Source of the DNA: Adineta vaga
Lineage: Eukaryota > Animalia > Rotifera
DNA: 64,000 nucleotides
Direction: 5' to 3'
Assembly (NCBI GenBank): GCA_021613535.1
Contig: CP075492.1
Span: forward strand, 6,696,001 to 6,760,000
Shown here: one piece after another, positions 1,157 to 6,358 of the stretch
Position numbering within the stretch: position 1 is the stretch's first letter
Layout of the letters: the number at the start of each line of letters is the position of its first letter
The notes under the pieces: generated by a model
Told to the model about the DNA's origin: nothing
The model's database searches: none
What the model saw: the letters and a program-made list of their open reading frames with translations, nothing else
Program-made: the position numbers and the translations under genes

Positions 1157-3709
1157 ATGTCTCGCCGTACAAAGGTCTTATTTTTTTCATCAGCATGTGC
1201 TTTAATTATTTATTTGCTTCGTCGTTATCGTCGATATTTGATTCTGAAACGAAAACTTCAAAGATCTGATTCAGCGAATAAACGATTTTATCATCAATTA
1301 CTTCGGCTTCTTCCGATCCTTATTCCACGATTACGAAGTGATTCATGTGCTTTATTAGCAATATATTTGACAACACTTGTTTCTCGAACATTTCTTTCTA
1401 TATCTATTGCACATATCGATGGTTCTATTGTCAAATCTTTAGTTCAACGAAATCATCGTGATTTCCTTCGTACTATTGGTATTTTTCTACTTGTTTCTAT
1501 CCCTGCTAGTTTTATTAATAGTTTCATTCGATTTGTTGAATCGAAACTTGCACTAGCATTTCGAACGAAATTAACTCATCATGCGTATGCCGCTTACTTC
1601 CGGGTAAATATCCTTCTTTCAAATACTATCGTTAACGAAAACATATTCATTTAGAATCAAACCTATTATCGTATATCAAATTTAGATACTCGTTTATTAA
1701 CACCAGATCAAAATCTAACGGATGATATTGAAACATTTACAACAACATTGACACATCTTTTTTCTCACTTAACAAAACCATTTCTTGATGTAGCACTTAT
1801 TTCATGGACGCTTGTGGTAATGGTTCAACAAAAACAAACGGCACGAGGTCTTAAAGGTAGCTTCCAATATAAAGCAAATCTTGAATAATCATTAACCTAG
1901 TGTTTTTCTTTTGCTAAACAGAAGTTCCTGTTTTAACAATAGTGGTTATTCTTTTGACGTTCTGGGCTCTTCGAAAACTTTCACCACGTTTCGGTAAACT
2001 CGTGTCTGAAGAAGCAAGAAAACGTGGTTTATTACGTTTTGCACATACAAGAATTATTACCAATGCTGAAGAAATTGCATTTTTCGATGGTCATGAAGTA
2101 AGAGACATAGATGAGTTATCACCTGCTTACGAACATTTTGATTCAGGTCGAAAAATCATGGATTTTGAAATTATACAATCAGTTGCGTCAACAAACGAAT
2201 GTGATTATTAAAAAAAAGTTATCGTTCATCATGCTCGAACAGTTTCTAATGAAATATTTTTGGCACTCATGTAATTTTAATCGAATGATTCAGTACCAGA
2301 AAAACTGATGGTTATTTTTATCTTTCGTTTTAGGTGGAATGGTTTTCATTGCCATACCAATGCTTTCATATCATGAATCATCAACAGCAGATAGTAATTA
2401 ATACAATTGAACAAGCCTAAAAATATGTGTCTTGTTATTAGATCCCATAGGTGAATCACTTGGGATTAGTACTCGTACAGAAGAATACACAATTAGTAAA
2501 AATCTCTTACAATCAGGTGCCGATGCTGTTGAACGTATCATATCATCATATAAAGAGGTAAGATTGAATTATGTTGATATGAAAGACATTTTTTGTCTTG
2601 ATCAGATTGCACAATTAGCAGGATATACCAATCGAGTTTATACAATGCTTCATGTATTTGATGAATGTGCACTTGAACGATATCAACGAATACCGATGAT
2701 TACAGAAGAACGATCAGCCATAGAAATGAAACGAAGAGTGGTATTAAATAAGCAAGCAGGTTAGATATATTTAATCGAAAAGATAATAATGTCAGGTTTT
2801 TTGTAATATAGAAGGTCAAATTATTGAATCAGTTGAAAATATCATCGCTGAAAATGTACCAATTATTACACCGAATGGTGATATTATTGTTGAAAGTCTT
2901 TCATTAAAAGTAGAATCTGAAAAAACAATACATAAACAAAATAACCATTCATCTTTGTTTAGATCACACCAGCGATGCACGTTTTAATTACAGGTCCTAA
3001 TGGTTGTGGTAAATCATCATTTTTCCGAATTATTCGAGGTTTATGGCCAATTCATTCAGGTCGTCTTTATCGACCAAATCCATCAAATTTCTTTCTCATT
3101 CCACAAAGACCATACATGTGTCCTGGAACCTTACGTGATCAGATTATATACCCTCATACTCTCGAGCATGCATTTGTCAACGATGATCAATTGATAGAAA
3201 TTCTCAATAGTGTTGAATTACAATACATAGTACAACGTGAAGGTGGCTTGAATGTTGAACGTGATTGGAAAGATATACTTTCAGGTGGAGAAAAACAACG
3301 TCTAGCTCTAGCTCGAATCTTCTATCACAAACCTAAATATGCTTTATTGGATGAATGTACTAGTGCAGTCTCGATTGATGTAGAAGGAAAAATCTATGAA
3401 CGCGCGAAACAATTAGGTATCACCTTGTTAACAATTACACATCGACCTTCTCTTTGGTGAGAAAAATTTTAATTTCTGAAGATTATTTATTATTGTTTGT
3501 CATTTTTCAGGGCTTATCATACACATTTATTGCAATTTAACGGCGAAGGTCAATGGACCTTTGAAGTTCTCAATACAGAAAAACGTTTAACGCTTAAAGG
3601 TGAAAAAGAACGTTTGGAAGTTCAATTAGCCGGTGTTCCTTCGATGCGACGACGTTTGAGTGAATTATGTCATTTACTTGGTGAAGATTCAAATGATGAT
3701 CAGAACTAA
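1157..3709 (+). CDS. ABCD1/2: Peroxisomal ABC half-transporter, ABCD1/ABCD2 (ALDP)-like; multi-exon
   Basis: EAA motif [16 protein letters not shown], Walker [10 protein letters not shown], signature LSGGEKQR, Walker [16 protein letters not shown]1/2-type segments [13 protein letters not shown] and [23 protein letters not shown]. Confidence 0.95.
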
Positions 3710-4109
3710 TACTATTGATTTCTTTTTTTCATGTCTTGTATCTAAATTGTGTTAAATAATAGAAGAAATAAATATACGCAATAGAAATAATTCAATTTGA
3801 ACATGAATTAAATCTGTTAATTTGACGTAAAAATGAATAGTGAAATATCATCGGTAAAAAAGGTGTTAATTTCTTCGACAATTTGTTAAAATAATCAGTA
3901 TCTTAATTTACACGTTACCAGTGTGAAATTTTATCAATTTTCTGCCTTCTTATAGCTTCGACATTCTTATTGAAAATCTGTATTCATTTATTACTATTGT
4001 ACTATCACACTAGAATCATTCAAGCCTTTTTCTCGGAACGATATACAAACAAAGTGAGTCGTGCAGATTCAATGTTGAAATAGAGAGTTATCATTCAAAT
4101 TTTTAGATA

Positions 4110-4627
4110 ATGCATCAACTGCCTATATTCATTCTTTCGATCATCATTGTACAAATGAGTTATGCTTGCTATATCACCAATTGTCCTATTGGTGGCAAAC
4201 GAAGTTTATATCTTAAGCCTAGTCATCATACACATGAAGTTAGACATCTTACTCGAAAATATGTAGGAAATGAGAGATCTTTTTGTTGATTTTAGTGTCC
4301 TCGTTGTGGACTCAATGGACAATGTTATGGATCATCCATCTGTTGTTCAAGCTTAGGTTGTCGTATTGGACATCCTTCGGACGTTCGTCAATGTTCAACT
4401 GAAAATCGAAGTGTTGTTCCATGTACGATCAAAGGTACCATTTGTTCGGCTGTACCAAATGGCCGTTGTGCTGCTAATGGAGTTTGTTGCGGCACAGGTA
4501 GATTATTGATTAAATATAAAATTTCTCAAAAATTACAACTATCTATCGTTTAGAATCATGCCGAACGGATGAAAGTTGTTCCATATCAATAAATCAAGAC
4601 GATGAATTACCTGCTTTATCTGCATGA
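4110..4627 (+). CDS. Oxytocin/vasopressin-family nonapeptide-neurophysin precursor (exons 4110-4238, 4296-4497, 4554-4627); predicted mature peptide CYITNCPIG-NH2
   Basis: 19-aa signal peptide MHQLPIFILSIIIVQMSYA, then CYITNCPIG-GKR (4167-4202), then a 14-Cys neurophysin CPRCGLNGQCYGSSICCSSLGC...CSTENRSVVPC...C...GRCAANGVCCGT|ESCRTDESC. A 5'UTR intron is likely at 4054-4106. Not in the ORF track. Confidence 0.97.
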
Positions 4628-4941
4628 TATCAAAATCTCTTTCTCTTATCTCTTGATATTATTTTACTGTACTGATGATCTGCGTATTTAAATTAAATAA
4701 ATAAACATAAAACGAAGAAGATTTTCAATTTTTTGTCTATCTAAGAATGTATCTTGAGCATGAAAAACAGAAAAATCAGATGTCACTAGTTTGCTTTGTT
4801 CATAGTAAAGTATTTTCAATTGGATCGATATGAATCATTGAAAAACCACGTGGAATAAAATTTATCTTTCTTCTTTAGTTATATGCTTATATCGAAATAA
4901 ACTTACCCAATATCAGTAAATCAATATTCCTTGTATCTATC

Positions 4942-6358
4942 ATGTCTCGTCAATATTCTAATCGTTCATATAATTCTTCACATGATAATTCATCTCGACG
5001 ACTTCGTCAATCACCACAAAATGATTATTCCTACTATCACAATTCACCTCATCGAGAAGGAACTAATCGCCGTCCAACAATACCTTTAAGTCGTATTACA
5101 GTAATAAATAAATTCTTTTTTTTTCTCAATCTTTTCTTTGTATATTACAATCAATTGCATTCAATAGACTGCCGCAACAGTATCAGCATCAACTCCACAT
5201 TATCGTTTTGAAAATCCATCAGCCGCTTCATTTACTCGTCGTCCACCTTGGTTTGATGGCGATTGGGAAGATCAACAACGACCAACATATTATCAAAATA
5301 ATCATATAAAACGTCAACGATCATCTGCGATTAACACATCTAACTTACAATCACATCATCATCATCATCCTCATCGTCAATATGAACGAAAACGTTCACG
5401 ACATAATGAACATGAACATTATCCATCGTATTCGTAAGAAAAACTAATCCTTACACAATTCTTTTTTAAGCTTTCTCGGTTTTTTTTGTCTGATGTAGAA
5501 ATCATCGTTCTACTACTAATCCTATAGTAACACATAATCGTTCTGTTCAACCTCTTCATCAATCACCACCTATTCCTACGATCTATCGTCAATCAATGCC
5601 TTCTCCTTCTCCTCCACCTTCTTCTTCAAATACACATTATCATCAAAATGGAATAACATTTGAATCTCTACCATATCATCCATCTCCAGTCTATCATCAA
5701 ACATCAATGTCTACACATATACATCAACGACCTTCACCATCGTTTCTTCTTACAAATTTACTTCAGTAAATAGCTCGATATTGATTTTAAAAACGAATGA
5801 AATTTTATCTTGTTCTCTAGTCGTATTATCGATACACATGCAGCTTCATACAGTGATAATCATATACATCATCATCCACCTGCAGCATCAATTGATTTGA
5901 TTGCCTATGCATGGATCTCTCCTAGTCACGAAATCTTTTCTTTATCACCAACATTTAATATGCAATTTGGTGTAAGAATTCTATTCTGTCAAGATTAGAC
6001 ATACATAAATACATACTTGTTTTCTATAGGATTTCTTTGATTTGACGATTCCGGATGAAACTCCAGTTGTTGGTTTAACTGATACTGAACTTGAACGATT
6101 ACCAACAATAATCTATTCAAAAACATCTACGAATATTGATATTGATGAAAAATGTGCTGTATGTTTAAATGAATATAATACTGGTGAAAAACTCAAACAT
6201 CTACGTTGTAAACATTACTTTCACAGTGAATGTATTGATCCATGGCTGAAGGTATGTGATAAATGTTATATTTTATTTCAATGAAGAGAAAAATATGATT
6301 GATTTATTTTTAGACATCAACTCGATGTCCCGTATGTCGTGGTGAACAGACAAATTAA
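4942..6358 (+). CDS. C-terminal RING-H2 E3 ligase with low-complexity His/Ser/Pro N-terminus (RNF38/RNF44/Arkadia-like architecture)
   Basis: GLTDTELERLP...CAVCLNEYNTGEKLKHLRCKHYFHSECIDPWLK|TSTRCPVCRGEQTN*; several short GT-AG introns upstream. Confidence 0.88.

Follow-up and report, generated by a model that had tools for sequence, protein, structure and literature searches.

The locus described here raises a simple question: is a sequence in a rotifer genome that could encode a nonapeptide one residue away from fish isotocin a genuine and expressed gene, and to which family and lineage does it belong? The window, by which we mean the whole stretch of DNA analysed, comprises 64,000 nucleotides of the Adineta vaga assembly (C3:6,696,001-6,760,000), and the vasopressin/oxytocin (VP/OT)-type gene occupies window positions 4110-4627 on the plus strand. 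A sequence-only reading had proposed that this interval, which is absent from the open reading frame (ORF) track, hides a complete precursor with a signal peptide, the hormone CYITNCPIG, a GKR site, a 14-Cys neurophysin and no copeptin. The evidence presented below argues that this is very probably the chromosome-3 copy of a bdelloid VP/OT-type precursor gene, orthologous to Vasopressin/Oxytocin_1 of Adineta ricciae.

Translation of the interval bore out the proposed anatomy in each of its parts. From a start ATG at 4110 to a stop TGA at 4625-4627, precisely the bounds that had been suggested, three coding exons on the plus strand give a 134-residue VP/OT-type precursor. It opens with a 19-residue signal peptide (4110-4166, MHQLPIFILSIIIVQMSYA), called by eye from its hydrophobic core and from the residues at -3 (Ser) and -1 (Ala); the first Cys of the hormone comes next. 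The nonapeptide CYITNCPIG (4167-4193) has the form C-x-x-x-N-C-P-x-G and reaches 19.2 bits with Pfam Hormone_4 (PF00220; curated cut-off 17.1) over residues 20-28. In the exon-1 translation it is followed by a GKR amidation and dibasic cleavage site (GGC AAA CGA, 4194-4202) and by a spacer of 12 residues that leads up to the first neurophysin Cys (4203-4238, SLYLKPSHHTHE), the end of which is fixed by the splice donor seen in cDNA. The neurophysin contains 14 Cys residues, 12 of them in a 67-residue Cys-rich block encoded by exon 2 and two in exon 3, which codes SC..D.SC, a 15-residue acidic tail and the TGA. Profile searches were made exon by exon. Exon 2 scored 47.2 bits with Hormone_5 (PF00184; curated cut-off 27.2, E 4e-12), the profile that the sequence-only reading had named as a check, and among solved structures (PDB) it matched bovine neurophysins only (E about 2e-5). 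Exon-by-exon translation of 4110-4627 revealed no copeptin. The locus is missing from the ORF track because its coding sequence is split by introns of 56-57 nt.

To define the transcript, assembled contigs from four public runs were placed on window positions 3950-4750. Spliced contigs with GT..AG joints were recovered from three of the runs (X1, X4 and X8), which come from three studies, so that the spliced transcript that had been called for was found, with three introns. A non-coding first exon (3980..4053, +) is present in X1 and X4 contigs and is joined to the first coding exon by removal of a 53-nt GT..AG intron in the 5′ UTR (4054..4106, +; joint 4053>4107, two studies); the X8 contig begins at 4151, and this joint is thus known from X1 and X4 only. 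Coding exon 1 (4107..4238, +), which carries the Hormone_4 match, ends at a donor at 4238/4239 in the cDNA. Intron 1 (4239..4295, +; 57 nt, phase 0, donor GTTAGA; joint 4238>4296 in X1, X4 and X8) directly precedes the first neurophysin Cys. Coding exon 2 (4296..4497, +), identified by Hormone_5 and the bovine neurophysin structures, supplies the neurophysin core with 12 of the 14 Cys. Intron 2 (4498..4553, +; 56 nt, phase 1, GT..AG; joint 4497>4554 in the same three runs, placed by moving the cut of the raw joint 4495>4552 by +2) falls within the Glu codon of CCGT-E-SC. The last exon, defined by translation and cDNA contigs, combines coding sequence (4554-4627) with the 3′ UTR (4554..4719, +). 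Overlapping AATAAA signals at 4696-4701 and 4700-4705 stand about 15-20 nt before the poly(A), which is placed at about 4716-4721 by loose poly(A) runs after 4716 in X8 and 4721 in X4. In X4, 24 nt of non-genomic sequence, presumably a SMART-type cDNA adapter, abut position 3980 and mark the cDNA 5′ end. The mRNA therefore consists of 3980-4053, 4107-4238, 4296-4497 and 4554 to about 4719, with transcription starting at about 3980, three GT..AG introns removed and poly(A) added near 4719. The RNA label of the runs is itself a guess that rests on the contigs, which are spliced, adapter-capped and polyadenylated and therefore represent cDNA; they carry no information on expression level or tissue.

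The position of the exon-1 donor determines the length of the spacer. A donor at 4262, the end of the long open frame, was considered and ruled out: the RNA joints, the paralog on chromosome 6 and the A. ricciae protein all point to 4238. Splicing takes place at GAA|GTTAGA (4238/4239), although the frame stays open to 4262, and this gives the 12-residue spacer and the precursor length of 134 residues.

The contigs also contain sequence variants. Two synonymous substitutions in the coding part of exon 3 (4582 C>G and 4612 T>C) and one in the 3′ UTR (4636 T>C) occur at about half depth in the X1 and X8 cDNA contigs. A fourth, 4417 T>C, changes a neurophysin Val to Ala; it is absent from X1, present in the sole covering X8 contig and at about half depth in X4. 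All four look like differences between homologous chromosomes or between strains. A further run, X9 (organism B), yielded a single low-depth contig spanning 4486-4635 that is unspliced across intron 2. X9, which bears another organism label, thus contains the locus either as DNA or as RNA that was not spliced.

VP/OT-type genes outside octopus have three protein-coding exons, and invertebrates usually have one such gene (PMC7181382). The cDNA joints show that the window gene has the same three-exon structure. Taken together, the transcripts, the domain matches and the exon structure establish the window gene as a genuine, expressed VP/OT precursor and a typical representative of an established family. 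In bovine genes, the introns occupy the same two positions with respect to the neurophysin.

We searched the genome for further copies. The assembly comprises six contigs of 13.9-20.4 Mb each (100.8 Mb in total), and the published A. vaga assembly consists of six haploid chromosomes, with 1, 2 and 3 homoeologous to 4, 5 and 6 (PMC8494291). The search returned a second VP/OT-type gene on chromosome 6 (L002:1333-1885, C6, minus strand), which is 72% identical in protein sequence to the chromosome 3 copy over exon 2. The two genes have the same exon sizes (129 and 202 nt) and intron positions, share the donor hexamer GTTAGA and encode an identical CYITNCPIG-GKR. The C-terminal tail of the chromosome 6 copy is longer, ending in ...HPRFPFLQ. 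Its sequence is present in an X8 contig, which indicates that this copy is also transcribed. Genes on both sides of the two loci are collinear, which identifies the pair as homoeologs from the bdelloid paleotetraploidy, in keeping with the published homoeology of chromosomes 1, 2 and 3 with 4, 5 and 6, and the second gene, set against the usual single gene of invertebrates, is accounted for by genome duplication. The genes that flank the window precursor lie at 3074-3709 and 5171-5404, and their counterparts stand beside the chromosome 6 copy in the same order. Protein identities of 52-87% between flanking genes on the two chromosomes show that the whole block was duplicated.

Divergence between the copies was measured by Nei-Gojobori counts, exon by exon. 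Within the hormone plus GKR there are 5 synonymous and 0 non-synonymous differences. For the neurophysin in exon 2, dN is 0.19 and dS 0.68 (ratio about 0.27), while the ratios are about 0.45 for the signal peptide and about 1 for the spacer. Such values are what one would expect of a precursor whose functional parts are the peptide and its carrier.

These data bear directly on two other explanations of the locus. If it were a decaying relic, a pseudogene or a chance open frame, the neutral evolution of the spacer would be easily understood; the hormone and neurophysin, however, are under purifying selection, the frames are intact in both paralogs, cDNA from three studies shows every splice site in use, both Pfam domains score above their curated cut-offs, and intact orthologs exist in other rotifers. 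We consider this reading to have almost no chance of being correct. Contamination, or a recent horizontal acquisition from a fish or another vertebrate, would explain why CYITNCPIG is one residue off both isotocin and mesotocin, but protostome peptides such as CYITNCPPG of Strigamia are equally close, and vertebrate neurophysins are matched only weakly (E about 2e-5). The setting of the gene argues against a foreign origin as well: it lies 6.7 Mb into the 20.35-Mb chromosome C3, its introns of 53-57 nt in AT-rich sequence resemble those of neighbouring genes, it has a collinear homoeolog at a synonymous divergence of about 0.7-1.2, and orthologs occur in other bdelloids and in Brachionus. A foreign source is accordingly extremely improbable, and the earlier suggestion that the DNA comes from a bdelloid rotifer is upheld by the chromosomal position and the syntenic homoeolog.

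We next considered what the resemblance to vertebrate peptides means. The comparisons made in the sequence-only reading are sound: isotocin (CYISNCPIG) and mesotocin (CYIQNCPIG) each have 8 of 9 residues in common with CYITNCPIG, including a neutral position 8. Their genes, like the window gene, have three protein-coding exons, and oxytocin-type precursors likewise lack copeptin. The window gene differs from them in Thr4, in a longer spacer before the neurophysin and in a neurophysin of no more than distant similarity (E about 2e-5). Table 1 of PMC7181382 adds an invertebrate comparison, as the closest invertebrate peptide listed there is CYITNCPPG of Strigamia; Tyr2-Ile3-Thr4 is thus not unusual among protostomes. 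The Strigamia peptide, inotocin (CLITNCPRG) and the crustacean peptide CFITNCPPG share with the rotifer peptide the x-I-T-N-C-P core and amidation, and their precursors likewise include a neurophysin, but the peptides have Pro or Arg in place of Ile at position 8, and mostly Leu or Phe at position 2. The comparison with Strigamia therefore reduces the likeness to isotocin to position 8 and does not extend it to orthology with the vertebrate oxytocin lineage. Nor do the rotifer copies descend from the vertebrate VP/OT gene duplication; they are bdelloid homoeologs that encode the same peptide. Of the earlier description of the peptide as oxytocin-like, the neutral Ile8 stands; judged from the sequences compared, the term covers position 8 only, as resemblance rather than orthology.

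Whether the gene is new was addressed by comparison with published rotifer precursors. According to the 2020 review (PMC7181382), with reference to Lockard, Ebert and Bargmann 2017, rotifers have lost VP/OT-type signalling. For the ligand, this statement was reversed in four rotifer species by a 2024 preprint on NP-HMMer (bioRxiv 10.1101/2024.07.20.604414), which reports two VP/OT precursors each for A. ricciae and Rotaria socialis (Figs S7, S10), all with CYITNCPIG-GKR, and lists one precursor for Brachionus plicatilis, with CYITNCPWG (Fig. S8). A full-text literature search for the nonapeptide string gave no match because the string stands only in a supplement. The novelty implied by the sequence-only reading is therefore lost: the identical nonapeptide was in print for two bdelloid species, and within the genus Adineta both this very peptide and its occurrence in two paralogs had been described.

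The published protein nearest to the window gene is Vasopressin/Oxytocin_1 of A. ricciae, which has the identical nonapeptide, GKR, a 12-residue spacer, all 14 Cys and a short acidic tail. By eye, 54 of the 67 exon-2 residues are identical (81%), leaving 13 substitutions in this part of the neurophysin; the signal peptide and the spacer also diverge. It was published as a protein only, without gene structure, transcript ends or homoeolog synteny. VP/OT_2 of A. ricciae and VP/OT_1 and VP/OT_2 of R. socialis show the same CYITNCPIG-GKR-neurophysin design, but the VP/OT_2 type has a longer C-terminal tail that it shares with the chromosome 6 copy, and these three proteins are counterparts of that homoeolog or orthologs from another genus rather than of the window gene. 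In the B. plicatilis precursor the hormone (CYITNCP-x-G) and GKR likewise precede a neurophysin with 14 Cys, but position 8 is Trp rather than Ile, the C-terminus carries a long extension and only one copy is listed. What the present analysis adds for A. vaga is a gene model backed by transcripts, which includes an intron in the 5′ UTR, the precise exon-1 donor and conserved coding-intron positions, and the demonstration that both copies are collinear homoeologs retained under purifying selection.

By analogy with other members of the family, the precursor would be processed as follows. The signal peptide would be removed after Ala19, a prohormone convertase would cut after Lys-Arg, and a carboxypeptidase would trim the basic residues. 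Gly10 could then serve as amide donor through peptidylglycine alpha-amidating monooxygenase, and the predicted product, CYITNCPIG-NH2 closed by a Cys1-Cys6 disulfide, has a calculated monoisotopic [M+H]+ of about 980.43. The neurophysin with its 14 Cys may act as carrier and chaperone of the peptide in secretory granules, and the released peptide would be expected to act on a putative G-protein-coupled receptor (GPCR). The chromosome 6 copy, as a paleotetraploidy homoeolog, is predicted to yield the same peptide. A copper monooxygenase family domain (PF01082) and a proprotein convertase P domain both occur in the genome; PF01082 also spans dopamine beta-hydroxylase-type enzymes and by itself is no proof of an amidating enzyme, so the two domains appear compatible with such a pathway rather than proof of it. 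A part for the peptide in the control of egg laying, of water balance or of desiccation behaviour, as had been suggested, is speculation.

Completeness of the A. vaga VP/OT system depends on the identity of the receptor. Hallmark motifs of VP/OT receptors include FQVLPQ, FQVxPQ, QxLPQxxW, WxPF[F/Y]xxQ and NPW[x]Y or NPWIY. These motifs were converted to degenerate DNA patterns and screened genome-wide, with reversed patterns as a control. Genome-wide, FQVLPQ, FQVxPQ, QxLPQxxW, WxPF[F/Y]xxQ and NPWIY occurred at about the control frequency or outside a GPCR context, in a screen for exact short motifs that an intron within the motif, short exons or one substitution would defeat. In parallel, 147 of 1955 first-look PF00001 candidates were scored, giving 159 matches, and about 120 loci were read by eye; none of these had a VP/OT-like TM2-TM3 or TM6-TM7 signature. 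Across the motif patterns and the loci read, with 147 of 1955 candidates scored, a canonical VP/OT-type receptor, which the sequence-only reading had made a condition of its proposal, was not found.

Several candidates were considered individually and rejected. The first exon of a GPCR on chromosome 4 (L084:546-1094; C4:12701545-12702093, minus strand) matches PF00001, but in the PDB it is closest to the GnRH receptor (E 6e-17), V1a being weaker by about four orders of magnitude. A homoeologous first exon lies on chromosome 1 (L094; C1:1941423-1941914, plus strand). The TM3 sequence is C-K-I-L-x-x-L-K, and CWTPYY is found in a later exon. As far as these matches indicate, the homoeologous pair is probably the AKH/GnRH-type receptor of A. 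vaga, and it is the nearest relative among the GPCR loci read. For two other loci, L123 and L060, the closest PDB entries are galanin, tachykinin, TRH or leukotriene receptors. An oxytocin or vasopressin receptor was thus the top match for none of the three candidates compared with the PDB (L084, L123 and L060).

These observations could be taken to mean that the ligand gene was kept and is expressed while the canonical VP/OT receptor is missing, the peptide acting through a diverged or different receptor or the precursor serving another role. Five hallmark motifs without a genome-wide match in a GPCR context, no VP/OT-like receptor among about 120 inspected PF00001 loci, a GnRH/AKH-type pair as the nearest clade member, and the passage of PMC7181382 that, citing Lockard et al. 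2017, has rotifers without VP/OT signalling all point in this direction. The motif screen, however, is broken by an intron or a single substitution, and the PF00001 scan scored 147 of 1955 candidates with no reference receptor as query. The claim of loss overlooked the peptide and is equally unreliable on the receptor, and a nonapeptide that is invariant between two paralogs and among three bdelloid species speaks for a binding partner that is itself conserved. On balance we regard a missing canonical receptor as unlikely. That bdelloids combine two expressed, constrained ligand genes with no canonical receptor, and rely on a highly diverged receptor or one of another family, is in our view likewise unlikely.

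One motif did exceed its control in the genome-wide screen, as NPW[x]Y gave 33 matches compared with 10 for the reversed pattern. This excess was rejected as a sign of VP/OT receptors, since it belongs to an unrelated, lineage-specific membrane-protein family. The family has at least 10 copies of a multi-pass membrane protein on several chromosomes (L015, L018, L021-L024, L027, L030, L031 and L034), and the copies share the conserved stretch ...C-[MV]-K-S-x-[RHQ]-NPW-[LFV]-Y-L-x-G-Y-F-I-S-F-I-P-S...
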